From Octopus bimaculoides (lineage: Eukaryota): a DNA stretch of 41,086 bases. Below are positions 5,896 to 40,759 of the stretch, piece by piece. The notes under the pieces were generated by a model that saw only the letters and a program-made list of their open reading frames with translations, was not told the DNA's origin and did not search any database. A program made the translations under genes and the position numbers. Position 1 is the stretch's first letter; each line of letters opens with the position of its first letter. Where the stretch lies: contig NC_068991.1 in NCBI RefSeq assembly GCF_001194135.2, positions 1,856,225-1,897,310 on the forward strand. The letters run 5' to 3'.

Positions 5896-6385
<490 letters not shown>

Positions 6386-7375: not shown

Positions 7376-8324
7376 ATCATTATTACTATCAATTAGGGAA
7401 TAGTAACCAAATCTCCCTCAAATCTCATATCTGTGTTTTAAAAGGGGAAGGACACATTACATAATATAGTCCTAGATGTACTTAACCTACATAAAAGATG
7501 GAATGGTCACACATGGAACGTAGTTCATAATAGATTTGCTAGATCAACGTTGATGACAAAATACGTAATAGACCTGCTTAAAATAACGGCCAAATACGCA
7601 TCAACCTATTCCCTATTGTCTTAGAAACATTGTATAATGTAGTCCCAGATACACTGAGTCTCAAAAGATGGCAACAGTTGAAACGTCTTTAGACCACAGC
7701 GAATAAACAGGACTTCCACCACAAAGAGTTCCCACATGCTTAACGATACGCTATGGTTACTGTGTTAAATGAAGTTAACGTTTGTTGCAATTCGTACGGT
7801 TTTTATTACGGATCAACATATCTGAACTTTATCTTTTTAAAGTTTATTTTATGGAAATTTAATCATTGCAAGAGTTTGTATTTTATCTTTTTTTTACTAT
7901 ATTTTTTTTAACCTTTGTTCTTGTCTGCTGCGATATAAAGAAATGTAATGAACAACACTGCAGATGAGAGGTTTCAATCATTTTAATTAAGCCAGATCTA
8001 ATTTTAGCAGTCAATTAACTGAAATCTTACATTCATATCAAAATGCATACATGTATTACGTGTGTATGTGTATATGTATATATACATAAATATATATACA
8101 AACATATATACACACAAATACATACATATAAATACACATGTACATATATATATTACATATATANNNNNNNNNNNNNNNNNNNNNNNNNNNNNNNNNNNNN
8201 NNNNNNNNNNNNNNNNNNNNNNNNNNNNNNNNNNNNNNNNNNNNNNNNNNNNNNNNNNNNNNNNNNNNNNNNNNNNNNNNNNNNNNNNNNNNNNNNNNNN
8301 NNNNNNNNNNNNNNNNNNNNNNAA

Positions 8325-9370: not shown

Positions 9371-11019
9371 NNNNNNNNNNNNNNNNNNNNNNNNNNNNNN
9401 NNNNNNNNNNNNNNNNNNNNNNNNNNNNNNNNNNNNNNNNNNNNNNNNNNNNNNNNNNNNNNNNNNNNNNNNNNNNNNNNNNNNNNNNNNNNNNNNNNNN
9501 NNNNNNNNNNNNNNNNNNNNNNNNNNNNNNNNNNNNNNNNNNNNNNNNNNNNNNNNNNNNNNNNNNNNNNNNNNNNNNNNNNNNNNNNNNNNNNNNNNNN
9601 NNNNNNNNNNNNNNNNNNNNNNNNNNNNNNNNNNNNNNNNNNNNNNNNNNNNNNNNNNNNNNNNNNNNNNNNNNNNNNNNNNNNNNNNNNNNNNNNNNNN
9701 NNNNNNNNNNNNNNNNNNNNNNNNNNNNNNNNNNNNNNNNNNNNNNNNNNNNNNNNNNNNNNNNNNNNNNNNNNNNNNNNNNNNNNNNNNNNNNNNNNNN
9801 NNNNNNNNNNNNNNNNNNNNNNNNNNNNNNNNNNNNNNNNNNNNNNNNNNNNNNNNNNNNNNNNNNNNNNNNNNNNNNNNNNNNNNNNNNNNNATATATA
9901 TTATATGCATATACAAGCGTCGACATATGTGAGTATGCGTGTGTGTGTACGGGCGTATCTATGTATGCATATATATATATATATATATATATGTCCGTAT
10001 GTATGTGTGTGTATATATATTATATATGTGTGTGTGTATATATATATATATGTATATATATATACACACACACTTACGTACACAAATACAACGCATACGT
10101 AATTACACACACGCGCATATGCACACATGCACACGTATAAATATGGCGAACCAATTGTTTTGTCTCAGCAGTGACATCATCACATGATGAATGTGGAGGG
10201 TGGTGGCGATGGTGCAGGAGTAGAGACCCCTAATGCGCCGTCCTTAATTGCTCAACTCAGTAAACGCTCCAACAACATCGCTGTTCACCTTCTCTATGCT
10301 GAATTCAAATTCGACTCTGGTATGTCAAAGAACTACCAGTTATGTAATACGTTCAAGTCCATTGGCTGAGCATATACATGCACTGTGTGTGTGTGTTCTC
10401 TTCTGGTTTTAGTTATTTAAATCCTTTCTCTGAAGAAGGAGCTGGTCTCTAACAAAGATACAAAGCTCCATCTTTGGAATGTTGATAACGAAAACAACGT
10501 CACATTTTAGACTTGAGAAAAGTCTTGTATATTTTTACTGTTCCCTTTACGGATTGTGTTTGTAATGTGCAAATCAGTTGGTTGATTTCTTTTTCTGCAA
10601 ATCCAAGCTTATCCAGATTATCGCTTAGGCATTTACTCACAAAACCGAACCCTCCAATTACTATTGGTAGATATGTGAATTTGTAATCCGGATAGAGAAG
10701 CTGGAGGTTTCTAAGCAGTTGTCATCTTTCGCTTTGATTTTCAAAGGGATATTCATTCACATCAGTAAGACAGCTAACCTCTATGACGGTATTTAGTTTT
10801 TCCTGTCTGTCTGGATGGATGGATGGATGGGTGGACGGATGGACAGACGGACGGACTGATTGATTGGTTGATTGATTGATTTACTTTCTTTTAATGTTTG
10901 GAAGTCTACCTACAAGGAAACAAAAGCATCATCGCTGGAATTTGTATGACTACTATAATTGTTACATACTTAACTTGAGCAGAGTCTTGCATATTTGTAT
11001 TGTTCCACAACAAAGCTGG

Positions 11020-11355
11020 CCTCAGCGGAATTTGAACTCAGAACATGAAGACGGAAGAAATACCGCTAAGCATTCCGTCCGGCCTGCTAACGACTCTGCC
11101 AGTTCGCCCCGCCTTAGAATTAACAACAAAAACAACAACAACAATAGCAGTAATCCTTTCTACTAAAGGCACAAGGCCAGCAATTTGGCGGGAGAGGGAA
11201 AGTCTATTAGATCGACCCCAGTACTCAACTGGTACTTATTTTATCGACCCCGAAAAGATAAAAGGCAAAGTCGACTTCGGCGGAATTCGAACTCAGAACA
11301 TAAAGACAGACGAAACGCCGCTAAGCGTAGCCCCGCATCTTACTAACAATGGCGA
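11020..11355 (-). mobile_element. SINE family A, one partial and one near-full copy
   Basis: Reverse-complement family A motifs CGGAATTTGAACTCAGAAC, ACTGGTACTTATTTTATCGACCCCGAAA and AAAGGCAAAGTCGAC. Confidence 0.85.
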
Positions 11356-11689: not shown

Positions 11690-11703
11690 TATANNNNNNN
11701 NNN

Positions 11704-14564: not shown

Positions 14565-15460
14565 TCTAATTGAGGCACAAGGCCAGCAACTTTGATGGAG
14601 GAAATGAGGTTAGTGAATACCACTGACACCAGTAGTTGACTGGTATTTTATTGATCCCCCAAAGGAGATGAAGGGTAAAGCTGGCCTTGGCAGGATTTGA
14701 ACTCAGAACATAAAGAGCAGCAAGAAAAACCACAATGTGTTTTCCCCCAAAGCTATAACAACAACAACAATAATAATAATATTAATAGTCCTTTCTACTG
14801 GAAGCACAGGGCCTCAAATTTGGTGGGGGAAGGGATTAAGTCAATTACATCAACCCCAGAACTTAACTCGTATTTATTTAATCAACCCCAAAAGGATGAA
14901 AGGTAAATTTGACCTCGGCGGAATTTGAACTCAGAACGTAAAGACAGACTGCTAAGCATTTCGCCCAGCGTGCTAACGTTTCTGCCAGCTCACAGCCTTA
15001 AATGAAGTCATAATAATCCTTTCTTTTATAGGGCACAAGGCCTGGATATTGTGGGGAAGAGGACAGTCGATTACATCGACCCAGTGTTTCACTGGTACTT
15101 AATTTATCAACCCCAAAAGGACGAAAGGCAAAGTCAACCTCGGCGGAATTTGAACTCAGAATATAACAGCAAGCAAAATACCACCAGGCATTTTGCCCAG
15201 CGTGCTAACGATTCTGCCAGCTCACCACCTTTAATAATGATAATAATTTCATTTAAATGGCACAAGTCTACAAAATTTGAAAACGAGAGGAGGGGTGACA
15301 AGAATAATTAATTCAACCCCAGTATCTAACTGGTATCTATTTTATGGACCTTCAAAATAATGAAAATCAACCACATCAGGATTTCAAACTAAGAATATAA
15401 ATGTGTGTAAACTTAATACCACAAACTATTATGTTTGATGCTCTACCGATTCTTCTGTCT
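14565..15460 (-). mobile_element. Head-to-tail cluster of about four SINE family A copies
   Basis: Repeated GGCACAAGGCC...CTGGTA...ATCAACCCC.AAAGGATGAAAGG...GGAATTTGAACTCAGAA units near 14565, 14790, 15015 and 15245, separated by (AAT/AAC)n. Confidence 0.85.
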
Positions 15461-16650: not shown

Positions 16651-17043
16651 GACATCAAATTAATTAAATCTGATACAAAAGTTTAAATCAAATAAGCAGA
16701 GAGCATGGGAGTGGGGGAGGGGTACTGGCAGGGTTGAGAGAATGTGTGTGTGTGTGTGTGCACAGATGTGCATGTGTGTAAGAGATCTATGTTGTGCATC
16801 AAAAAATGGATGTGTGTGTGTGTGTGTGTGTGTGTAATGAAGAAATGTTTACTGAGCAGAAGCCGCCCCAGAAGCAAGGCAACAGCAGCAGCAGCAGTAG
16901 CAGCAGCAACCATCCATCCTCTGATGCATTGTCCATCCAACAAGAGAGTCCAGTCAGCAGAAGTCACTCTGTTAGTTATCATCAGGTGTGCCCCCCCAGG
17001 ACCCAGCTGGACCCACTGGTGCCCATTGAGGACTCGAAGATCT

Positions 17044-17069
17044 TTAGGACCTAAGGATCTTTACAAAAT
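17044..17069 (-). CDS. Calmodulin-like gene, terminal coding exon (DFVKILRS-stop)
   Basis: Acceptor ttttctttttgtttcag|AT TTT GTA AAG ATC CTT AGG TCC TAA. It completes G|AT = Asp and aligns to the CaM C-terminus EFVQMMTAK; stop codon at 17046-17044. Confidence 0.93.
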
Positions 17070-17116
17070 CTGAAACAAAAAGAAAACATCAGTGTCATTT
17101 AATGTCTGTCTGAATA

Positions 17117-17165
<49 letters not shown>

Positions 17166-17167
<2 letters not shown>

Positions 17168-17386
17168 CCTTTCTACTAAATGCACAAGGCCTGAAATTTT
17201 GGGGGAGGAGGGGATTAAGTCGATTACATCGACCCCAATGCGTAACTGGTACTTATTTAATGGACCCCGAAAGGATGAAAGGCAAAGTCAACCTCGACGG
17301 AATTTGAACTCAGAACGTCACGGCAGACGAAATAGCGCTAAGCATTTCCGCCCAGCGTGCTAACGTTTCTGCCAACTCGCCGCCTC
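17166..17386 (-). mobile_element. SINE family A, near-intact copy in the last intron of the calmodulin-like gene
   Basis: Reverse complement begins GGCGGCGAGTTGGCAGAAACGTTAGCACGC...GTTCTGAGTTCAAATTCCG; (ATT)n tail at 17117-17166. Confidence 0.9.
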
Positions 17387-17852
17387 AACCAGAACAACAA
17401 CAATACTTCCAAAAGATCGAGTTGTTACCGAAATGTAAGCTAAACTCTGTGGAGAGAATAAAATGAAGGGCGGCGGCAGCAGTTGTGAGACGCGTGGCAG
17501 GGGTTTTGAATTTGGAACAAAGAGGAACAGTAAGATCTTGACTGAAAACCTCAGAAAATAGGGATTAGTGTACAAGGAGACTAATAAGTGAAGGAAAGGA
17601 AAAAATGAGTTTAAAAACGATTTTGAAAATATCAAGGGAGATAATCCTAGCAAAACTAGTGTGTAAGCAAGGGGAATAACTCTGGCTTATAACATTGAAA
17701 AAAGAGCAGGTGACAAGGGGTTATTAACCTACCCCATTTCATTCACAAGGTTTTGGTTAACCATGAGCTAACATAAGAGATACCTATCCAACAATGGGAC
17801 TAAACTCTGAACCAAATGCCTCTGACAGACTTCTTGACCAATGGACACTTAC

Positions 17853-18095
17853 CATCATAGTTAACTCTTCCGTCGGCTGTAATCTCAGCTTCCCTGATCA
17901 TTTCATCGACTTCCTCATCAGACAGTTTCTCACCAAGGTTCGTCAACACATGACGCAGCTCAGCACAGGAGATGTAACCGTTGCCGTCTTTGTCGAACAC
18001 ACGAAACGCTTCTTTCAGCTCGTCGTCTGTGTCCTGGGTTATCTGCTGTTTCGAAATGATGCTCACAACATCCTGATCGGTGAGTTTACGATTTC
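17853..18095 (-). CDS. Calmodulin-like gene, 243-nt coding exon (end of EF2, linker, EF3, most of EF4)
   Basis: Minus strand: acceptor ttgctttcag|GA AAT at 18095, donor GAT G|gtaagt at 17853, phase 1-1. Encodes (G)[80 protein letters not shown]. The segment EAFRVF...MIREA matches calmodulin 87-128 at 39/42 positions by manual alignment to the recalled CaM sequence. 243 nt equals vertebrate CALM exons 4+5 (107+136). Confidence 0.97.
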
Positions 18096-18360
18096 CTGAA
18101 AGCAACAAATATACATTCCAACACTGAACTCATCTAAATGTCAGCAAACATACAACAACTAAGCATGAAATTAGCATACGCTGATCGACCAGTACATATA
18201 TATACACACTGTTTGAGAATATACATCTTCACTCACTATATATATATATACACACATACATACATACATACATCCTTCTCCTTATAATTCCTGAATTTAA
18301 ATTTTAAATTCATAATCCAACTTCAAATGATCTCCCTTGTAAGAGGTGTCGCCACTAGAT

Positions 18361-18669
18361 CAGGAATTCTCAGCCAGTTTTTATCAATGGACCCCTTTGT
18401 TTGCTATTTTATCCTAGCAGACCCTCATAGTCATAAGATGTTGAAAAACTAGTTTTATAGGAACTCCCTTCAAAATTCCTCTTTTGGTTTTCACACATTA
18501 ACTTGTGTGGGTTGAATTATGTAAAATGTTAGAGAAAGAAACCCAGCTGTTTCTTGCAATACAGACCAATACATACATCTAAAGCAGAAATTCTTTCAGG
18601 GGCTCTAATATACTGTTTTGTTGCATGGAACCCCAGAAATCTTATATGGACCCTGGTTGAGAACCATTG
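18361..18669. mobile_element. hAT (Charlie/Buster-like) MITE in an intron of the calmodulin-like gene
   Basis: TIRs CAGGAATTCTCAGCC ... GGTTGAGAACCATTG (10/15 to each other, both near CAGTGGTTCTCAACC). The 8-bp flanks CACTAGAT and CATTAGAG (6/8) fit the NNNTAGAN target site. Confidence 0.65.
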
Positions 18670-18979
18670 CATTAGAGGGATCATGTGTGTTTTAATAACT
18701 TTAAATTCAAAAAATCTTTTTTTTCAAAATATTGTCACTGCAGCAGTAAATTTTTTCTAAAATGTCAACAGCAGCCAAATCTGCATCAGATCGTTTCTCA
18801 CCATCATAAAAAAGAGGAAGGACATCTTGGAAGAAAATAATCCAAGATATTGAACAGACGAAAAGACAACAGTGCCAAGTGTGGAACCTATCTGACTAGA
18901 GATCTGCTCAGCCAGGCCAACCTGGGGTTAAACAATAACAACAGACAAGAAATCAAATAATGAATCATTCGTTACCTAC

Positions 18980-19123
18980 CACTGCTATCAATGGCATCTC
19001 GAATATTTTTCACTTCAGCTTCTGTCGGACTGTAACCGATCGCTCGCATCACGGTCCCAATGTCTTGTGAGAAAATACAGCTGTCACCATCTTTGGCAAA
19101 CACAACGCAGGCCTCTCGGCACA
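18980..19123 (-). CDS. Calmodulin-like gene, 144-nt coding exon (EF1 and start of EF2)
   Basis: Acceptor ctctttgcag|TG TGC at 19123, donor AGT G|gtaggt at 18980, phase 1-1. Encodes CREACVVFAKDGDSCIFSQDIGTVMRAIGYSPTEAEVKNIRDAIDSS, which aligns without gaps to CaM [47 protein letters not shown]. It has the same 144-nt length as vertebrate CALM exon 3. Confidence 0.95.
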
Positions 19124-19164
19124 CTGCAAAGAGTAGCACATTGGTAGGACTCAATGATTACATG

Positions 19165-19171
<7 letters not shown>

Positions 19172-19237
<66 letters not shown>

Positions 19238-19238
19238 A

Positions 19239-19269
<31 letters not shown>

Positions 19270-19290
19270 TAGAGAGAGAGATACACACAC
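19172..19290. repeat. (AT)n(AG)n compound microsatellite just upstream of the 144-nt exon acceptor
   Basis: Direct inspection; reads as (CT)n(AT)n on the transcribed strand. Confidence 0.95.
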
Positions 19291-19817
19291 AAATATATAT
19301 ATAAATATATATAATTATAAATATATAGGGATTGACAGTAACCTGCTTCTCCAACATACTGAGAATTCAGAAATAGCAGTCAAGGAACTACTGATTTCAA
19401 AACTACAAATTATTACTCCAGATTGATAGCGATATAAGAAGGTTTTTTTCATACTGAGCTACCCGGCAGAATTGTTAATTATTAATTTTATTACTAATTG
19501 ATGATTCCCTGCCCTGCATATNNNNNNNNNNCAAATCAGACTGGAGCCTGGTGTTGCCATCCGGTTTCACCAGTCCTCAGTCAAATCGTCCAACCCATGC
19601 TAGCATGGAAAGCGGACGTTAAACGATGATGATGATGATGATGATGATGTATACATACATACATACATACATACAAATATGCATATACATACATATGGGA
19701 TAAAATATATGAAACCCAGTACACCCATCATGACTACCCGTCTGAATAGGATACACCAGGCACATGCATCACAACCGTATGTGCGTGACATGGTGATCTC
19801 ATATCAAGATAAACAGA

Positions 19818-20025
19818 GCTGGCAGAGGCATTAGAAGGTCAGGCTAAATGCTTAGCAGCATTTCACCCGTCTTTCTGTACTGAGTTCAAATTCTGCCAAG
19901 ATCAACTTCACCTTCCATCCCTCTGGGGTTAATAAAATAAGTACCAGTTCAACACAGGGGTCAATTTAAACAACTTACCCCCTTCCTCAAAACTGCTGGC
20001 CTTGTGCCAAAATTTGAAACCATTA
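19818..20025 (+). mobile_element. SINE family A copy
   Basis: GCTGGCAGA...AATGCTTAGCAGCATTTC...CTGAGTTCAAATTCTGCC...AAAATAAGTACCAG...GGCCTTGTGCCAAAATTTGAAACC. Confidence 0.85.
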
Positions 20026-20660
20026 TGATCACCACCACTACTACAACCACCACTACTACTACTACTACCACCACCACCACCACCACCACCACTACTACAA
20101 CACATCAACACATATGTTGTTGTTATCTCACTACAAGTAAAGGGGAGGGGTGTGGATCTCCTCAAACTGCAAACCTGGTGCAAACACTTCCACTAAAACT
20201 CACTGAAGGGCCAGGTGGTGCTGTTAAACCACCCATCAAATACACACAGTTCACCCTTTTACACTCTGTGTACCCCGGTGACCCATTTACAATATGTACC
20301 CAGCTGTCAGCTCCATATTATGCACAACTGATATTGTATATATATATATATATACACAAAGCTTGACAGGAGGGCCAGGAGGAGGACATGTGGACTTCAA
20401 CTAAATGAACTGATGTATATTCATTGCCAGAACTGTTGTAGTGGTGTTTGAGTGGTAGTCATGTTGGGAGTGGGGTTTCAGTACCCAAACATGGACGACC
20501 AGAACTGACCTGGGATTAAACGTCTAGTATGTGTGTGCATGTACATAAACACACACACACAAGTATATATTGACATAATATATATATATATATATTCTTT
20601 TAGTCTTTTATTTGTTTCAATCATTTGACTGCGGTTATGCTGGAGCACTGCCTTTAGTCA

Positions 20661-20738
<78 letters not shown>

Positions 20739-21058
20739 GTATGCATGTATATACACACACACACACACACACACTTATCCATATACCGTCCTACGCTGAG
20801 GTTGATCATTCTCTTTCATACATATTCTCTCTCTTTCTCTCTCTCTCTCCCCTGGAAGAAAAGGAGTTTTGATCAGACCTAGAAAGGGATGGGCACCACC
20901 AGGTTTGACAGTAATTGAGGGTCCAAGGAAGAGAGCAGAAAGGTTAGGGTTAACAGGCAGCATCAGAACTTAATATGAGGGTTAGCTTTAAGGTTAGGGT
21001 TAAGATAAGAATAAGGGTAATTTTCAAAGACTGATGAATAAATTTGATAAATACTCAC

Positions 21059-21092
21059 AGTCCATCTTTTCCCGATTCATTCTTATTGTAGC
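21059..21092 (-). CDS. Calmodulin-like gene, 34-nt coding exon (N-terminal ATIRMNREKMD)
   Basis: Strong acceptor tttttctctcatttcag|GCT and donor GAC T|gtgagt, phase 0-1. It starts with Ala like CALM exon 2 (31 nt; here one codon longer) and joins the 144-nt exon in frame (T|TG = Leu). Confidence 0.88.
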
Positions 21093-21866
21093 CTGAAATG
21101 AGAGAAAAATTGAGCAAAATTGAGATTTTACAGAAACAATATATACACCCTTCGGTTTATACACACATCAGACCCTGAATTTATAAACAATACATAAACA
21201 TTAGGTTTATATATATTCTGTAGGTTTTCCCTTTCCCCTCACATATCCACTTACCTGCACACAATATGCCCCTGTTGAATCCCTCCCCCACCCCCTCTAG
21301 CTCCTATTTTCCTTTTGAAATCTTGTGAGCTCACTAACCTACCCACCCTCTCCCGTCTCCAGACCCCTTCACTATATACATCCCCACCCCTTGTAACCTG
21401 GGTGTATGGCCTCTTCCCCCTCTCTGCCACATCTTCACCATCTGAGGAAGCCATGTCTCTCTTCTCATGCAACACCCATTTTCTGTCCCTCAAGACTAGT
21501 CCTCCCCACCCCAGTTGAGGAATCTTGTCCTGCAAGCTATTTTGGTCATCTTACAAGTGCTGAAGCCACGTAAAAAGCCACCCGGTCCACACTCTGTAAA
21601 GTAGTTGGTGTCAGGAAGGACATCCAGCCATAAAAACATAGAAACCATGCAAAAACAGACAGGAGAGGTTGACGCAGTCTTCAACCTATCAAACTGTCCC
21701 ACCCATGCCAGCATGGAAAAATGGATGTTAAATGATGATGATGATGGTGATGATGAATATATAGTTATGGTATATTCTGTTAAGAATGTAGTAGAAAATA
21801 GTATAAAGCTCAGATTTACCCTTTAAAACAACAACCACTTTAACAGTAAACTGGAAGGAGACTGTC

Positions 21867-23949: not shown

Positions 23950-24170
23950 AATGGTTTCAAATTTTGCCACAAGGGCAGCAATTTGGGAGGAGGGGGGATG
24001 AGTCGATTATATCGACCCCAGTACACAACTGGTACTTATTTTATCGACCCCGAAAGGATGGAAAGCAAAGTTGACCTCGGCGGAATTTGAACTCAGAATG
24101 TACCAACGGATGAAATATTGCTAAGCATTTTGTCCAGCATGCTAACGATTCTGTCAGCTCGACGCCTTAA
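23950..24170 (-). mobile_element. SINE family A copy
   Basis: Reverse-complement family A motifs with an (AAT)n tail at 23900-23948. Confidence 0.85.
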
Positions 24171-25051: not shown

Positions 25052-25514
25052 TCATTCTTGGACAAGGATATTATTGACACTGATTTTGAAGTTTCAAACC
25101 ACTGAAGTCATATGTGTGTGTTTGTGTGTCTGTTTATACACACACATAAAGAAAGAGAAGTGGAGGAAAGATAGATTGAAAGGTGAGTGGATGAACAGAC
25201 AGACAGACAGCTACTGACACTTTAATATAGATATACATATATAAATATATATTTACACATGAAGAGAAATAGATCCAGCTATAAATATCTAAAGATACAT
25301 ATGTGTGTATATAAATATATATGTACACACACACACCTATAAAGATTTATATAAACACATAACGATTTACACATAGATAAGAGATAGTTACACATAATAT
25401 GTACACACATCCACACACACATATATATACACACATACATCAGATACACACAAACAAAGAATGAGAAAGTTTGAGAAAATAAAGAGAAAAGAAATAAGAA
25501 ACTTCAATATTCAC

Positions 25515-25534
25515 CATTATTTAAGTTGGTTTTC
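25515..25534 (-). CDS. Candidate initiator microexon of the calmodulin-like gene (5' UTR + ATG at 25517-25515)
   Basis: Minus strand ccacttatttatctttcacaag|GAAAACCAACTTAAATAATG|gtgaat. It ends exactly at ATG (phase 0), as in calmodulin genes, has A at -3, and gives a 149-aa product like CaM. The AAG acceptor and GTGAAT donor are only moderate, so this is not certain. Confidence 0.45.
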
Positions 25535-26184
25535 CTTGTGAAAGATAAATAAGTGGAAATATATAAACTTGGATAATAAGCACAACTAGTGCTACTACTA
25601 TTACTAATAAATACTGTTGTTACTGCAACACCTTAATGAGAGAGAGAGTGACGACGAACAAGCAGGTAGGCTGGGCGTTGTCTCGCACAGTTGGTCTCAC
25701 AGGGAAATAAGGTCAGCAACTGAAGCTATGAAGGAAAGTTTAATAAAGAAATACCACCACCACCGTCCCCGTTCTCACACACAATCTTTTGTGAATGTGT
25801 GTGTGTGTGTATGTGTGTGTGTGTGTGTGTGTGTGACCACACCTCTCTCTACTACAATGGCATAGAAAGACAGTGAGAAACAATGTGATCACTGGATCTG
25901 CTAGAAATATGTCCCAGCTATCACCTTTCTGTGTCAAGTTAGGAAGAATGCAAAAGACAAGGGAGTCCTAAATAGCCCTAATATACAGGGTTAACCGTGG
26001 CTAAATTGCATTTAAGACCAGGTCAGCTGGAGCAAGGCTGGTCTTGGGATTTATTTAATGAAATGGTGAATTATTTAAAATGGTGTGTTTGTTGTTTGTC
26101 AGACTTGGATTATTGAAACGAAACAAGTTTATAAAATTTTGGTTTTATTTATTAAATAAACATTGACTGAAGCAAGAGCACATT

Positions 26185-31735: not shown

Positions 31736-31821
31736 CTGGATGTTTGATCAAAGACAGGGAGGGTTGTTGTGATGGAAGAAGACCACTGCAACGGTGTTTA
31801 ATGTCTTGTAATATAATAAAC
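31736..31821 (-). other. Candidate non-coding 5' UTR exon (minus strand), possibly of the calmodulin-like gene
   Basis: Acceptor gatcgtcttcag| at 31821, strong donor CCAG|gtaagt at 31736, 86 nt with no ATG. A further donor GGGAG|gtaagc lies at 31900. Linkage to the CaM-like gene is inference. Confidence 0.35.
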
Positions 31822-32879
31822 CTGAAGACGATCCAGCGAAAAACGTTAATATATGAGAGAAGGTGGCGGGAATTAATTGATGGTGTTGTTGTTGCTTACC
31901 TCCCTTGGATCTGGACCTTCCTCACACTACTACTATTCCACCCCTCTCTCTCTCTATTCTTCTATATTATTATTATCTGCTTCCCAACACCTACTTCCTA
32001 CCATTGTTCGGATTTCCTCTTACCTTTACTCCCCCATCATCCTCCTCCTCCGTCTCTCTACCACTCCTCTTTTCTTCTACCTCTCCCTCTGTCTCTCTCT
32101 TTCTTTCCATCCCTTTCTCTTTCTCTGTCTCTCTCTCTGCACGCACACATACATATAGTGTATATATGTGTATGCGTGTGTGTGTGTCATTGTGTGCGTG
32201 TTTGTCCCCCACCACAACTCGACAACCGGTGTTGGTGTGTTTGCGTCCTCGTACCCTAACGGTTCGGCAAAAGAGTGATCGGTAAAATAAGTAAGAGGCT
32301 TTTAAAAAGAATGAAGCATTGGAGTCGACTCGTTCGACTAAAATTCTTCAAGGTGGTGCTCCAGCATGGCCGCAGTCACGAAAGATTGAAACAAGTAAAA
32401 GATAAAAGATTAACAGATTAGAAATAAAAGCAAGGACGAAACAGAAAAAAAAATGATGTTGGACCTTGGCACGGTCTCGGCCATGTTTCTTCTCACTGAT
32501 AACATAATGTGTGACTCGTATAAAGATTGAACCTGCTTTCAAATATTCCATTTCTATGGAAACTCATGACCCTTCCAGATATCCAACAATCCCATGAATG
32601 CCCCCCACCCCCGCCTTATTCGTCGTCCCCTCTTCAACTCAACGGATGTTATCGTTCGAATTAAGAAACCTTAATTTAATGTATTCTTTCCTTGTTGTTT
32701 AAACCAAGGTCAGTCTGATCCCGTGGATCAATGATCAAAAGCGTTCCAGTCGTGACCATCCTGTCTTATATTCAGCCACAGTTCTCTCTTCTTTGCTTTC
32801 TCCAACAGTTTCTACTTCCCGATGTTTGATCCCTTTTTTTCCTTCCAACCAATTCCTCAAGATTCACATCCATTACCAT

Positions 32880-33280
32880 CCTTCTTCTTCCTCTGCTTCT
32901 TTTCTCTTCAGTCTTTCTCTGCTCGTCACTAAATTCTCCCTGGGCCCTCTTTCCTCATCACGCAACCCAAGANNNNNNNNNNCCAAGAAATCTCAGATGC
33001 CTGGGCCCTCTTTCCTCATCACGCAACCCAAGAAATCTCAGATGCCTGGGCCCTCTTTCCTCATCACGCAACCCAAGAAATCTCAGACGCCTGGGCCCTG
33101 ATCTCACGAAGCAGTTTCCTATTTACCACAGCCCAGGTCACCACTTCCTCATCAGACACATTGTCTGTCCAGGCCATCCTCAATATTCTCCTCAAGAACC
33201 ACATTTCACAGTTCTCCAAGACCCTACTCATTTCTGATGCTAGAGACCATTCCTCACTTCCATACATTAACACAAGGTAG
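32880..33280 (-). mobile_element. RTE-clade LINE fragment (C-terminal RT-associated region)
   Basis: LMYGSEEWSLASEMSRVLENCEMWFLRRILRMAWTDNVSDEEV followed, after a frameshift, by sequence resembling LRFLG.VMRKEG.ENLV. This matches the RTE motif series LLYGSETW...EMW..RR.L.I.W.D.V.NEEV...LRF.GHVMR. Contains an internal 45-bp tandem repeat. Confidence 0.8.
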
Positions 33281-35794: not shown

Positions 35795-35992
35795 GCAAAA
35801 GGCCTGAAATTTTGGGGAATGAGTTAAGTCGATTGCATGGACCCAAGAGCGTAACTGGTATTGAATTTATCGACCCTGAAAGGATGAAAGGCAAAGTGGA
35901 TCTCGGCGGAATTTGAACTCAGAACGTAAAGCCGGACGAAATGCCGCTAAGCCTTCTGCCCGGCGCGGTAACGATTCTGCCAGCTCGCCCCC
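35795..35992 (-). mobile_element. SINE family A copy (other partial copies at 34135-34273 and 37990-38170)
   Basis: Reverse-complement family A head and core motifs. Confidence 0.85.
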
Positions 35993-36429
35993 TTGATAAT
36001 AATAACAATAATAATGATCCTTTGTACTATAGGCACAAGGCCTGGATTTTGTGGACTGGCAGAGAATGCCATAATTGCTACAAAAGGTACGCAGTCAAAA
36101 ATGTTTTCCGCTATTTCTCCTCTTCCATTTAACATCCTGCCTTCGGGTTCCAATTTTACATCATCTAATTAAGATATGCTTCATTATGAATGTCGATGTA
36201 ATCAGGCTAGCCACAAGTGTGGCCTTCTATCGAAGATTAGACATCATGACTCAAAGACAAATTTCGAAATGACAATTCTATATTGTCATTACCGGAAGTT
36301 TTTCCAGGAAGAAAAGAGAAACATAATCGACATTAGATGATTCTAGAGAGAATTGTGCTTAACAAAAATAAACCTGGTGACCATTTGGTGAGAGATGCGG
36401 AAGAATGGACAGACAGCATTGATATAAAT

Positions 36430-36471
<42 letters not shown>

Positions 36472-37210
36472 NNNNNNNNNNNNNNNNNNNNNNNNNNNNN
36501 NNNNNNNNNNNNNNNNNNNNNNNNNNNNNNNNNNNNNNNNNNNNNNNNNNNNNNNNNNNNNNNNNNNNNNNNNNNNNNNNNNNNNNNNNNNNNNNNNNNN
36601 NNNNNNNNNNNNNNNNNNNNNNNNNNNNNNNNNNNNNNNNNNNNNNNNNNNNNNNNNNNNNNNNNNNNNNNNNNNNNNNNNNNNNNNNNNNNNNNNNNNN
36701 NNNNNNNNNNNNNNNNNNNNNNNNNNNNNNNNNNNNNNNNNNNNNNNNNNNNNNNNNNNNNNNNNNNNNNNNNNNNNNNNNNNNNNNNNNNNNNNNNNNN
36801 NNNNNNNNNNNNNNNNNNNNNNNNNNNNNNNNNNNNNNNNNNNNNNNNNNNNNNNNNNNNNNNNNNNNNNNNNNNNNNNNNNNNNNNNNNNNNNNNNNNN
36901 NNNNNNNNNNNNNNNNNNNNNNNNNNNNNNNNNNNNNNNNNNNNNNNNNNNNNNNNNNNNNNNNNNGTGTGTGTGTGAGAGAGAGAGTGTGTGTGTGAGA
37001 GAGAGAGTGTGTGTGTGAGAGAGAGAAAGATAGAAAGAGATAGATCGTGTGTGTGTGTGTGTGCGTGTGTGAGAGAGAAAGAGAGAGAGAGAGAGAGAGA
37101 TCGTGTGTGTGTGTGTGTGAGAGAGAGAGAAAGAGAGAGAGAGATCGTGTGTGTGTGTGTGTGTGAGAGAGAGAGAAAGAGAGAGAGAGAGAGTGTGTGT
37201 CCGTGTGTGT
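36430..37210. repeat. (GT)/(GA) compound microsatellite spanning an assembly gap of about 495 N
   Basis: Direct inspection. Confidence 0.95.
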
Positions 37211-38241
37211 ACTGATCGATTGCTCAATAGTTTTTGTGTAGTTTGTGTATTTATTCTACTTTAAAAAAAAGACGTGTATCAGTTACTTATATGTCTCTAA
37301 ATACCTGTAACTCTGCGTCGTGTCGAAGCTGGGCTGTGACGAGACGGTCTTGCTTTCCCAGCTTTTTTTCGTAACTATAAATTGTCGTCATGGAGACGTT
37401 GGACAAAATCGTGAAGACGAGTTTTCCAGTTCTCTCCCTTAGAACTATTTTTTCACAAAATGAGTGAGTTGTCTCCCTTGATTGTTAACCCACCTTTTTC
37501 GATTGACCACGAAAACTACGAAGTTGTGGTCTCTCTGACAGTCTTTCCGGACGCTAGAAACAATAGTCGTAGCTTCCGGAAATCACACTTTACTGCATTA
37601 GAAAGAGACAGGTAGTTGGATTATGAAGTTCAAGCTATGCAATACTAGTCGTACGAGGTAAAAGGAAGTCATTATTTGATCGCTTCACAAGCTAGAAATA
37701 GCAGTAAAATATTCCTCAAGTCATAATCTACTTTACGTAATGTCTCTCCAGACGCGTTTAGTTTAAACCTTTCAAAACGTGCTGGTTATTATGTTTTCGG
37801 TATTAGATCTGCTTAATAAGGGTTTCCATGGGGCTAAGCAGCTTCACCACCCATATCTATATTTATAAACATCATATATAACTCATACTTAGCGTTAGAG
37901 AGAGAATATAGACCCAATAACGACAGAAATCAGGTGTGCTTAATAGATAAGCATAAAGGCAGGGATTTCATGGGAGAGACCAATCGATAATGGCATCGGC
38001 ATTACTTGACAGGAACTTTATTTGATCGAAAGGTCGAAGGGTAAAGTCGACTTCAGCGGGATTTGAACTCGGAATGTAAAGGCCTGTGAACTTTGGTGTC
38101 TGGTTTCCAGTAGTAAGTGGTTGGGAAATAAGTCGATTTCACGCACCCCGTATCCAAAATTGCGCGCGCAAGTGTGTGTATGTATACATATTGTGCACCA
38201 GCATGACCGCAGCCACTTGGCTGAAACACATAAATAAATAA

Positions 38242-38274
<33 letters not shown>

Positions 38275-38682
38275 NNNNNNNNNNNNNNNNNNNNNNNNNN
38301 NNNNNNNNNNNNNNNNNNNNNNNNNNNNNNNNNNNNNNNNNNNNNNNNNNNNNNNNNNNNNNNNNNNNNNNNNNNNNNNNNNNNNNNNNNNNNNNNNNNN
38401 NNNNNNNNNNNNNNNNNNNNNNNNNNNNNNNNNNNNNNNNNNNNNNNNNNNNNNNNNNNNNNNNNNNNNNNNNNNNNNNNNNNNNNNNNNNNNNNNNNNN
38501 NNNNNNNNNNNNNNNNNNNNNNNNNNNNNNNNNNNNNNNNNNNNNNNNNNNNNNNNNNNNNNNNNNNNNNNNNNNNNNNNNNNNNNNNNNNNNNNNNNNN
38601 NNNNNNNNNNNNNNNNNNNNNNNNNNNNNNNNNNNNNNNNNNNNNNNNNNNNNNNNNNNNNNNNNNNNNNNNNNNNNNNNNN

Positions 38683-38726
<44 letters not shown>

Positions 38727-40448
38727 CACAAACATACAGACATATACATACATATATGCACACACACGTGTATATATGTATGTGTGTATTTGTGTGTGTA
38801 TGTGTGCGTGTGTGTGTATGTGTGTGTATGTGTGCGTGTGTGTGTGTGTGTGTTGTACGCGTTGTTTTTATGGCATTGTTGTTGTAGTTGTTGTTGTTTT
38901 CGTTCATGAGGCTGTATATGAATGTTGTTGTTATTGCTGACAGTGACAGCGTCGGAAAAATATTTTTGAAGTCGGCCAAAGCAACCGAAATGTCACACAC
39001 ACACACACACACACACACATATTCAAAACCACATCCCTCGCCCCCCACAAGCCAAACCACTAACATAACCGTTGGTAGGTAATACCATAATGATCCAATG
39101 GTTGACTGTTGGCATTTAAACATTTAAAAGCCAGGAATTCCTGTTGTCCAACACAGCCAAAGAGACGGTGTGTTGTTTAGGGAGAACTAACACTTGTCAT
39201 GTGCCTCTAGAATCGTGCTTCCGCCTTCAGTTTGGTGCCATATCAACCAGTTCAGGATTCCCTATCATAAATAACAACCGTATTATTGTTCTGTCGGCAC
39301 TAGCGTACCTAGAGCGTACCTGGGCGCGAGTTTTTTTTTCCCACGAGTGTTCCGGACCTTAGAAATGAACTCATTTGCATACAGCCAATCAGAGCTCACC
39401 TTGACCTTGTCATGTTAACAAGCACACTTTATCAAGTAAACTCAAGTACGAAGAACAGTGTTGTAAGTCGAACGATCGCCAAGTTATGCCTGATTTTAGA
39501 AAGAGACAAGTAATTAGAATTGCATTTCTACCTATTATCGGATTTTGTTAGGGTCCCATATGGTAAAGATGGGGATGGGGCAAATGTGGGCAGAGGGTGA
39601 TATGCTAGCAACCCTCTTCCCTTACAAAACTGTCCGACGAACGGGAACGTGAAATTCTGAGTAACAGTTTTCGCGCTTTTTTTGCTGCTTTTTAATGAAG
39701 CATATTACTCTACCTCTGGTACTCGAGCACTATTTATATATATATATATNNNNNNNNNNNNNNNNNNNNNNNNNNNNNNNNNNNNNNNNNNNNNNNNNNN
39801 NNNNNNNNNNNNNNNNNNNNNNNNNNNNNNNNNNNNNNNNNNNNNNNNNNNNNNNNNNNNNNNNNNNNNNNNNNNNNNNNNNNNNNNNNNNNNNNNNNNN
39901 NNNNNNNNNNNNNNATATATTGTTGTTATTATGCAAAAGTGGCGTAAGTAAAAAACGTTGTTTTTTCAGAAAACGAAAAAATAATTTCACTATTCCATTG
40001 CAAAACCGTTCTGCTACACTTTGACAATTTTTGATATCTTGGCATTTGAAGCAGCTGGAGATACGATAGTTTGACCAAAACAACCGGCTACCGCAACCAA
40101 AAATAAATATTGAAAATGCATTTTGCCAAATTTGGACATATGACAGTTTAACATAATAGCAACGATATGTATAGAGTTGTATATGGGCTCATAAAATGGA
40201 TATGTGCGCGTATGTATGTATGTATTTATAAAAATATTATATATGTGTGTATGTATGTTTGTGTATGTGTATATGTATGCACACATACACGTAGTTCTAA
40301 CGTAAAGTGCACATATGTGTGTGTTTGCGTGTGTATATGTATATGCATGTGTGTGCGCGTGCGTGTAAATATCAATGGATGAACAAATATAAACACATCC
40401 GTCGAGGACAACAGTAGCCTTTTAGCTTGGCTATTTTCGGGGTTAGAC

Positions 40449-40498: not shown

Positions 40499-40520
40499 NN
40501 NNNNNNNNNNNNNNNNNNNN

Positions 40521-40736: not shown

Positions 40737-40759
40737 NNNNNNNNNNNNNNNNNNNNNNN

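Follow-up and report, generated by a model that had tools for sequence, protein, structure and literature searches.

Calmodulin (CaM) is among the most invariant of animal proteins. In its EF-hand loops the glutamate at position 12 is a bidentate ligand, and replacing the aspartate at position 1 by alanine (as in CaM D20A/D56A) abolishes Ca2+ binding. The engineered CaM12, a lobe-specific mutant of the channel-regulation literature, carries this D20A/D56A pair. CALML4 (the Myo7b light chain), Drosophila Androcam, Mlc-c and the myosin essential light chains (ELCs) are derived from CaM or resemble it; they have four EF-hands with degenerate Ca2+ sites and act as dedicated subunits on IQ motifs. 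Squidulin, a calmodulin-like protein from the optic lobe of the cephalopod Doryteuthis (Loligo) pealei, is about 149 amino acids long and has four canonical EF loops. At the level of gene structure, the CaM genes of the abalone Haliotis discus hannai have five exons, with exon 1 contributing the ATG only and exon 4 lacking an intron, and some molluscs possess multiple calmodulin genes (PMC6171432).

The gene described here, LOC106876554 on chromosome CM046611.1 of Octopus bimaculoides, is an uncharacterised lineage-specific calmodulin-like paralogue of octopuses and cuttlefish. It lies within the window, that is the whole 41-kb stretch of DNA (41,086 nucleotides) that we analysed. A sequence-only reading of the window had proposed four exons of 34, 144, 243 and 26 nt with GT-AG sites that splice in frame and, together with an ATG, encode 149 amino acids. 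The borders of all four exons were confirmed (Table 1). Each is flanked by AG and GT on the minus strand, together they form a single open frame of 447 nt, and every junction is supported by RNA reads, which also placed the ATG in a separate exon 1. The spliced product, methionine plus 148 amino acids, is 100% identical to RefSeq XP_014780632.1 (‘calmodulin isoform X2’). RefSeq/GenBank already contains predictions of the gene for four species, and what it lacks is characterisation; a literature search with the gene and protein accessions returned no match and no functional study.

Table 1. Features of LOC106876554, in coordinates of the window.
Feature	Coordinates	Strand	Description
Exon 1	25515..25700	minus	~185 nt 5'UTR plus start ATG at 25517-25515; donor GT 25514-25513; 5' end approximate (coverage runs out between ~25685 and 25720)
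Exon 2	21059..21092	minus	34 nt, phase 0 to 1; codes ATIRMNREKMD(L)
Intron 2	19124..21058	minus	1935 nt as assembled; microsatellites and a SINE-like copy
Exon 3	18980..19123	minus	144 nt; end of helix A, degenerate EF1 (AKDGDSCIFSQD), helices B/C to first EF2-loop residues
Exon 4	17853..18095	minus	243 nt; remainder of altered EF2, central linker, canonical EF3, altered EF4
Exon 5, coding part	17044..17069	minus	26 nt; ..DFVKILRS, stop TAA 17046-17044
Alternative non-coding 5' exon	31736..31865	minus	donor GT 31735-31734; 5' end approximate; spliced to exon 2
First coding exon of RefSeq-predicted 177-aa isoform X1	37305..37391	minus	MTTIYSYEKKLGKQDRLVTAQLRHDAELQ; placed by tblastn

LOC106876554 is abundantly transcribed and correctly spliced. 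With 6% of each run sampled, exon 4 is covered at 400-600x. Two raw-read runs contribute 424 and 224 reads over the junction between 18095 and 18980, which transcript contigs of two further runs also span. At 17853, the loose ends of transcript contigs read ATCTTTAGGACCTAAGGATCTTTACAAAAT, which corresponds exactly to 17040-17069; those at 19123 continue exactly from 21059 onward, and about 200 reads per run splice directly from 21059 to 19123. Exon 2 is covered at ~230x, with coverage limited to 21059-21093. Loose ends at 21092/3 read ...AATAATG followed by GCTACA, the AATAATG side mapping to 25515, and in each run some 150 reads connect ...AATAATG with the GCTACAAT of exon 2. Because these loose-end reads place the ATG at the 3' end of exon 1 (25515), the predicted ATG is real. 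It stands alone at that exon's 3' end, 4.4 kb beyond the range covered by the sequence-only reading, as it does in true calmodulin genes. Exon 1 is further backed by its depth profile and by a contig piece spanning 25514-25671, and downstream the 3'UTR runs on below 17044 for at least ~230 nt, judged from the length of the transcript contigs.

The three RefSeq isoforms (X1, X2 and X3) differ in their 5' exons and share an identical divergent body. An alternative 5' exon, linked to exon 2 through ...CAAACATCCAG by 36 and 68 reads, has a depth of ~55-75x, or 15-20% that of exon 1. Its use leads to translation from an ATG inside exon 2 (MNREK), yielding the 144-amino acid isoform X3. For the first exon predicted for X1, we found zero reads or contigs in four RNA runs. 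A 10-N assembly gap at 19522-19531, present identically in assembly GCA_001194135.2, falls within intron 2; since it is intronic and reads splice across the intron, the continuity and frame of the coding sequence do not depend on it. We also searched for a tRNA that could account for the SINE-like copy in this intron and found none.

The exon layout (ATG/34/144/243/26 nt), with phase 1 introns at codons 12, 60 and 141 in CaM numbering, is that of a calmodulin gene. The earlier proposal that the locus arose by DNA-level duplication of calmodulin, with introns retained, holds: the gene has the ATG-only first exon plus three more introns at CaM positions and phases. It is neither a retrocopy nor a pseudogene, as four introns are present and spliced and all five species preserve the reading frame. 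A reading of the 243-nt exon, which gives a tblastn match to CaM at E = 7e-31, as a merger of two vertebrate exons was ruled out: 3/31/144/243/29 is the usual layout of molluscan and ascidian CaM genes (PMC6171432). Two small departures from it are seen, exon 5 being one codon shorter than in CaM and, in octopods, exon 2 one codon longer. To judge from the Sepia transcript, which implies 31 nt as in calmodulin, the 34-nt exon 2 is a one-codon gain in octopods.

Upon alignment with vertebrate CaM, 72 of 144 positions (50%) are identical; the best database matches outside the family reach 50-55% identity, and the near-invariance of calmodulin sensu stricto (above ~90% among animals) is not seen. 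The strong asymmetry of divergence that had been noticed from the DNA alone was borne out, with 23/72 positions identical to CaM in the N-lobe (32%) vs 48/66 in the C-lobe, and the finer counts were reproduced exactly (22/64 over CaM 12-75, 39/42 over 87-128 and 8/19 over 129-147). Across the family alignment 104 of 144 positions are invariant. Of these, 41 carry a residue other than that of CaM (28 positions in the N half, 13 in the C half), among them D20A, E31D, G61R, E67D, D131T, G132A, F12C and F16C. At the sequence level, EF3 alone retains the canonical loop (Asp 1, Gly 6, Glu 12) that calmodulin sensu stricto has in all four of its Ca2+-binding EF-hands, and its ligand positions are invariant across the family. 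The EF1 loop (A-K-D-G-D-S-C-I-F-S-Q-D) has lost the aspartate at position 1 to alanine and carries aspartate for glutamate at position 12. EF2 (D-x-S/D-x-N-R-K-L-T/S-D-Q-D) has arginine for glycine at position 6 and aspartate at position 12, and keeps oxygen ligands at positions 1, 3, 5 and 9. In octopods, EF4 has glutamate at position 1, Thr-Ala at positions 3-4 and aspartate at position 12; Sepia EF4 retains Asp 1 and Glu 12. Seven of the nine calmodulin methionines are replaced by isoleucine, leucine or glutamine, and the helix A core phenylalanines F12 and F16 by an invariant cysteine pair (C9 and C13). The residues of the C-lobe cleft (F92, I100, L105, L112, L116, M124, I125, A128, V136 and F141) are kept.

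The protein belongs to the EF-hand superfamily (Pfam EF-hand_7, E = 1e-22; EF-hand_1, E = 6e-17), with its best-scoring EF-hand stretches at residues 85-148. Its AF2 model, of moderate confidence (pLDDT 70) and silent on whether the lobes are open or closed, displays eight helices in four helix-loop-helix units. The best 50 Foldseek matches are all calmodulin with probability 1.00, and calmodulin is the closest PDB protein both by sequence and by fold.

The same exon layout, including the equivalent of exon 2, occurs in O. sinensis, O. vulgaris and Argonauta hians. In Sepia esculenta we found orthologous transcript contigs (L007 and L011), and an intron-retaining fragment from Sepia (P0131) has identical exon 3 borders. 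The duplication is old and predates the split between octopods and cuttlefish. Searches with the N-lobe only, by single sequence and by profile, returned just the cephalopod family plus one further fragment (P0269), and gave no evidence of orthology to CALML4, Androcam, Mlc-c or the ELCs; they were word-indexed and heuristic, and because they missed the Argonauta orthologue they are non-exhaustive and the limit of the family to coleoids is provisional. The additional fragment was rejected as a family member: it comes from metagenome contigs, is probably eukaryotic, and its EF1 is canonical (DKDNDGCITTPE). We also ran HMMER exhaustively against representatives clustered at 50% identity, a level that may merge the family with CaM. 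No representative had an intermediate N-lobe, with the best outsider at 41% vs at least 72% within the family; multi-repeat CaM fusions and ordinary CaMs, at ~175 bits, made up the bulk of the list.

Both lobes are under strong purifying selection. By the Nei-Gojobori method, O. bimaculoides and O. sinensis differ by 27 synonymous changes and one non-synonymous change (ω = 0.008), with 10 synonymous and 0 non-synonymous changes in the N-lobe alone. Between Octopus and Argonauta ω is 0.04, and for two decapod sequences (dS 0.2) it is 0.16 over the whole protein, with 0.33 for the N-lobe and 0.05 for the C-lobe. The remodelled N-lobe, with its 28 fixed differences from CaM, is now constrained like the rest of the protein.

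These data bear on several other accounts of the locus. An N-terminal half that matches CaM at so few positions, with substituted Ca2+ ligand positions and without the best-scoring Pfam stretch among its EF-hands, could belong to a decaying duplicate that is drifting toward a pseudogene. We give this explanation almost no credence: five species have an open frame, the splice sites are all intact and in use, read depth is high, and the 28 N-lobe differences are unchanged from octopus to cuttlefish. Furthermore, the dN/dS values among orthologues (0.008-0.16), proposed by the sequence-only reading as a check on decay along with RNA reads over the junctions, lie far from 1 and mark the gene as not a pseudogene. 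The 10-N gap inside the range of that reading and the RefSeq label of calmodulin isoforms might instead point to an artefact, either an assembly chimera across the gap or an alternative isoform of a canonical CaM gene. This, too, has a negligible chance of being correct, since RNA reads splice over the intronic gap, the RefSeq isoforms vary in their 5' exons alone with the divergent body common to all three, and independent assemblies of three other species carry the same gene. We saw no transcripts linking LOC106876554 exons to canonical calmodulin exons, and both the 41-kb window and the regions flanking the orthologous loci are devoid of canonical CaM exons.

Two further alternatives concern the conserved lobe. 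Restriction of the 39/42 identity to one block within one exon, in a phylum where some members have multi-copy CaM (PMC6171432), would fit recurrent gene conversion from canonical CaM, rather than selection on the protein's own function, as what upholds the near-identity of EF3 and helices F-G. We consider it very improbable. The family-invariant M109L sits in the middle of the block, and twelve further C-half substitutions are common to octopods and cuttlefish; because both groups share these changes, the sites have escaped conversion since the two lineages parted. Moreover, synonymous divergence of the C-lobe ranges from normal to saturated among orthologues (dS 0.4-0.5 within Octopus, above 1 in deeper pairs), and there is no CaM gene nearby: in four genomes we found no tandem copy around this locus. 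A Ca2+-independent structural light chain of the ELC/CALML4 kind, devoid of sensing, deserves more weight, although we still regard it as unlikely. Three of the four EF loops are altered, including octopod EF4, and the replacement of methionines by isoleucine or leucine suggests a single fixed partner. Against it stand the fully canonical EF3 with its invariant ligands and the Asp 1 and Glu 12 of Sepia EF4. Because the intact EF3 loop is so conserved, retained Ca2+ binding is the simplest account.

We therefore favor, with some confidence, a functional lineage-specific CaM paralogue that would combine a Ca2+-insensitive N-lobe with a Ca2+-responsive C-lobe and act as a dedicated subunit or sensor. 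The candidate roles of Ca2+ sensor and of IQ/light-chain partner are both plausible. Calmodulin was duplicated at the DNA level before octopods and cuttlefish separated. In the proposed mechanism, the N-lobe of the copy would be blind to Ca2+ and serve as a fixed, partner-specific anchoring module; this insensitivity is firm for EF1 only, since the oxygen ligands at positions 1, 3, 5 and 9 could allow EF2 to bind Ca2+ or Mg2+ weakly. The C-lobe is predicted to bind Ca2+ at EF3, and perhaps at EF4, and its cleft to grip a calmodulin-type helix, whether that of an IQ-like motif or that of a classical CaM-binding one. Such a protein would be a dedicated light-chain or regulatory subunit with C-lobe-only Ca2+ regulation, a natural counterpart of the engineered CaM12. 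A more speculative and rather doubtful extension is that coleoids use this protein as a natural ‘N-lobe-dead’ calmodulin, which would compete with or replace CaM on ion channels, unconventional myosins and other targets of the IQ type and convert bilobal to C-lobe-only regulation. Under this reading the invariant cysteine pair C9 and C13 might add redox or metal sensitivity. If true, Ca2+ signalling would have gained a layer specific to this lineage, in a nervous or sensory system of unusual complexity for an invertebrate.

Lineage-specific genes that resemble calmodulin occur commonly among invertebrates, which makes the finding unsurprising in kind. Its value lies in the combination of one lobe that stayed near calmodulin with another that was rebuilt and then frozen from octopus to cuttlefish, a clean natural experiment on lobe-specific function, and the partner, if found, could reveal how Ca2+ signalling diversified in cephalopods. 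The RefSeq name ‘calmodulin isoform X1/X2/X3’ is misleading, and expression or proteomic work that pools this gene with calmodulin would misassign its signal.

Compared with known systems, the octopus protein shares with canonical metazoan calmodulin its four EF-hand units in two lobes, a closely similar length (149 or 144 vs 149 amino acids), the ATG-only exon 1 with introns at the same codons and phases, and the near-identical block over EF3 and helices F-G. By contrast, it contains four cysteines, two of them family-invariant, and vertebrate CaM has none. Squidulin presumably differs from the octopus paralogue in its N-terminal half. CaM12 is matched by the natural D20A, an impaired EF2 and a largely intact C-lobe, from which C-lobe-only signalling would be expected; unlike CaM12, the octopus gene is natural and anciently fixed, its N-lobe core and surface are remodelled, and EF4 is altered. 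The light chains CALML4, Androcam, Mlc-c and the ELCs are the most plausible analogue for how the protein works, a likeness suggested indirectly by degenerate EF loops and by methionine replacement with isoleucine or leucine, with IQ binding putative. These light chains, however, are diverged throughout, whereas the octopus protein keeps one lobe close to calmodulin.

The window is part of O. bimaculoides chromosome CM046611.1 (GCA_001194135.2, ~1.86-1.90 Mb; 100% identity to the matching stretch). When its 41 kb were searched by tblastn with vertebrate calmodulin (CaM), the exons of LOC106876554 were the only matches (E = 7e-31 and 4e-10). Exons 2-5 splice into a 447-nt open frame that terminates in TAA, and its product with a leading methionine matches XP_014780632.1 ('calmodulin isoform X2', O. 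bimaculoides, LOC106876554) at 100% identity. RNA evidence from the same species came from raw reads of two RNA-seq runs (~6% samples) and transcript contigs of two further runs. Junction 18095/18980 is crossed by 424 and 224 reads in the two samples, read ends at 17853 run on as exactly 17069-17040, and those at 19123 run on as exactly 21059 onward. Because the assembly gap lies inside intron 2, these junctions prove the frame at the RNA level, independently of the gap. The sequence-only reading had proposed just these four GT-AG exons, joined in frame into 149 amino acids with an ATG; borders, frame, junction reads and the RefSeq protein all agree with it, and its identity counts against CaM were exact (22/64 over CaM 12-75, 39/42 over 87-128, 8/19 over 129-147). 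No second calmodulin-like gene was found anywhere in the window or next to the orthologous loci, so LOC106876554 does not belong to a tandem array.

Features of the LOC106876554 locus, in window positions
Feature	Position	Strand	Remarks
Exon 1	3' end at 25515	minus	~185 nt 5'UTR, last codon ATG, then GT
Exon 2	21092-21059	minus	34 nt, AG...GT borders
Intron 2	21058-19124	minus	contains 10-N assembly gap 19522-19531
Exon 3	19123-18980	minus	144 nt, AG...GT borders
Exon 4	18095-17853	minus	243 nt, AG...GT borders
Exon 5, coding part	17069-17044	minus	26 nt, TAA end, 5' AG border
Alternative non-coding 5' exon	31736-31865	minus	used in ~15-30% of transcripts
First coding exon of X1 (177 aa)	37391-37305	minus	RefSeq prediction
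Further assembly gaps, first five of ten	6004-6013, 8164-8322, 9371-9893, 11694-11703, 32973-32982		
Further assembly gaps, last five of ten	36472-36966, 38275-38682, 39750-39914, 40499-40520, 40737-40759		
SINE-like repeat	17170-17395		~200 bp; 14 further places
SINE-like repeat, examples of other places	11157-11347, 14792-15001, 15033-15230, 19816-20007 (minus), 23968-24170, 35795-35993		

Upstream of exon 2 the reads split into two classes. In the first (~150 reads in each run) the sequence goes on as ...CTTAAATAATG and maps to 25515. The earlier guess that the first coding exon would consist of the ATG alone was right, and the reads place this exon 4.4 kb outside the range then reported. 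The minority class (36 and 68 reads) derives from a non-coding exon whose end is 31736, and such transcripts must start at an internal ATG (MNREK...), yielding the 144-aa RefSeq isoform X3. Sepia transcripts likewise come with the upstream ATG present or absent. The predicted first exon of X1 drew 0 reads across the four RNA runs. Exon depth reaches 400-600x in a 6% sample, indicating high expression in those libraries. Recoding RNA editing is widespread in coleoids. Inside exons 3-4 (17853-19123), two deep RNA runs showed no base difference of at least 10%, A-to-G (T>C on the plus strand) included; there is thus no sign of strong editing there, and in those samples the transcript is not a strong recoding target.

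The surrounding DNA is repetitive. The SINE-like interspersed repeat occurs in ~15 copies or fragments (66-84% identity), several within LOC106876554 introns; ARAGORN found no tRNA gene in the window. Two intron 3 patches (18205-18294, 18475-18609) show very high read and contig depth with many joints that go back. They are not exons of LOC106876554: one finds there a microsatellite, (TA)n/(TACA)n, and a short repeat whose transcripts originate elsewhere. Most of the ten further gaps are bordered by long dinucleotide microsatellites, and those covered by the matching chromosome stretch all persist in the chromosome-level assembly. Two of them (32973-32982 and 36472-36966) fall within the annotated gene span 17044-37391, in the interval that separates its 5' exons at 31.7 kb and 37.3 kb.

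The exon layout of LOC106876554 (ATG/34/144/243/26) matches that of CaM (ATG/31/144/243/29) codon for codon and in phase. Canonical molluscan CaM genes, of which abalone has four, are built of five exons; exon 1 comprises the start codon only and exon 4 is intronless, as in ascidians (PMC6171432). LOC106876554 therefore stands on the standard invertebrate calmodulin scaffold: the earlier view of an intact scaffold holds, but the vertebrate six-exon layout to which it had been compared was the wrong reference. Exon sizes and GT-AG borders are identical in O. vulgaris, O. sinensis and Argonauta hians, the ATG-ending exon was also found in Argonauta, and an intron-retaining Sepia fragment has identical exon 3 borders. 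In cuttlefish, the transcript form MAAR-MNREK points to an exon 2 of 31 nt, the length found in CaM, so that the 34-nt exon reflects an octopod gain of one codon. This shared scaffold places LOC106876554 in the calmodulin gene lineage.

The product has a calmodulin fold. Its best PDB match by sequence is calmodulin (E ~1e-46 to 1e-55), the AF2 model has eight helices (pLDDT 70), and Foldseek returned calmodulin in all top 50 hits for that model. The best-scoring Pfam EF-hand stretches all fall within residues 85-148. EF-hand loops require Asp at position 1 and Glu at position 12. EF1 (A-K-D-G-D-S-C-I-F-S-Q-D) has Ala for the position-1 Asp, Ser for Gly6 and Asp for Glu12; EF2 has Arg for Gly6 and Asp for Glu12; EF3 is canonical. 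In EF4, Asp3-Gly4 is Thr-Ala in all family species, and octopods also carry Glu at position 1 and Asp at position 12; Sepia retains Asp1 and Glu12. The changes D20A, E31D, G61R, E67D, D131T and G132A (CaM numbering) are shared by every family member. Of the nine methionine positions in CaM, seven are now Ile, Leu or Gln, leaving only M36 and M124. In helix A an invariant Cys pair replaces F12 and F16, and Val-Val replaces F68/L69; the C-lobe cleft keeps its hydrophobic residues.

The O. sinensis and O. vulgaris orthologues are 1-2 amino acids apart from that of O. bimaculoides, and for that of Argonauta hians identity is 85% across all 149 aa and 88% across the 144-aa core. Many RNA runs contain family transcript contigs at 78-83% identity, and a Sepia esculenta study names two of these runs in its data statement, so the family covers Octopodiformes and, within Decapodiformes, cuttlefish at least. 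By Nei-Gojobori estimates, O. bimaculoides and O. sinensis differ by 27 synonymous and 1 non-synonymous changes (omega 0.008), omega is ~0.04 between Octopus and Argonauta, and deeper pairs are saturated at synonymous sites, with dN at most 0.13 over the whole protein. Taken per lobe, as had been suggested, selection is purifying: the N-lobe of the O. bimaculoides-O. sinensis pair shows 10 synonymous and 0 non-synonymous changes, and two decapod sequences at dS 0.2 give an omega of 0.16 overall, 0.33 in the N-lobe and 0.05 in the C-lobe. At 104 of 144 positions the family is invariant, 63 of them the same as CaM and 41 different, of which 28 belong to the N half and 13 to the C half. The rebuilding of the N half was thus a single, ancient event, and its outcome has stayed constant ever since. 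Low omega, invariant positions and orthologues across octopods and cuttlefish exclude a pseudogene. The original interpretation of a calmodulin paralogue with asymmetric lobes is supported, its scaffold reference corrected. We also noted at least three distinct decapodiform gene versions (an ERR4030425 contig, the Sepia esculenta type and an SRR7548197 contig) with mutual dS of 0.12-0.23. Of the ten amino-acid changes in the SRR7548197 version, eight fall in the N-lobe, a hint that this lobe has evolved adaptively or under somewhat relaxed constraint in that lineage.

The data show LOC106876554 to be a calmodulin paralogue that is both expressed and conserved and whose ligand residues have changed. 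By EF-hand rules, high-affinity Ca2+ binding by the N-lobe would be lost, certainly at EF1 and probably at EF2, and this lobe may have turned into a fixed module specific to one partner. The C-lobe is predicted to retain Ca2+ binding at EF3, perhaps EF4, and could still grip a target helix of the calmodulin type. Such a protein would be a dedicated light chain or regulatory subunit, conferring Ca2+ control through its C-lobe only. The main rival, a purely structural light chain indifferent to Ca2+, strikes us as rather improbable. The CaM-like block of the C half might instead be ascribed to gene conversion, but this is unlikely given the family-invariant M109L in mid-block, twelve further C-half substitutions common to octopus and cuttlefish, and normal synonymous divergence in the block.

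GenBank/RefSeq already lists predictions of the gene for four species, under the misleading name 'calmodulin isoform', and a literature search found no paper citing its accessions in the library covered. Lineage-specific calmodulin-like proteins are common in invertebrates, and LOC106876554 is an uncharacterised one, distinguished by its sharp lobe asymmetry plus deep conservation. Among ~270 collected relatives, N-lobe identity is 72% or more for family members, and no relative outside the family exceeds 41%. Heuristic searches with the N-lobe alone against 5.8 billion proteins gave the cephalopod family and nothing else, though they missed the Argonauta protein, and an exhaustive search on 50%-clustered proteins could not tell the family apart from calmodulin; the family can therefore be called coleoid-restricted only provisionally. 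Squidulin has four canonical loops and probably an N half unlike this one. With 50% identity to calmodulin and three of four loops non-canonical, the product falls outside calmodulin sensu stricto. The searches do not point to orthology with CALML4, Androcam, myosin light chains or CaM12. By analogy, the protein may nevertheless resemble CALML4, Androcam and myosin light chains in function, as well as the engineered CaM12 mutants: the Ala at EF1 position 1 is the very change of the engineered D20A knock-out.
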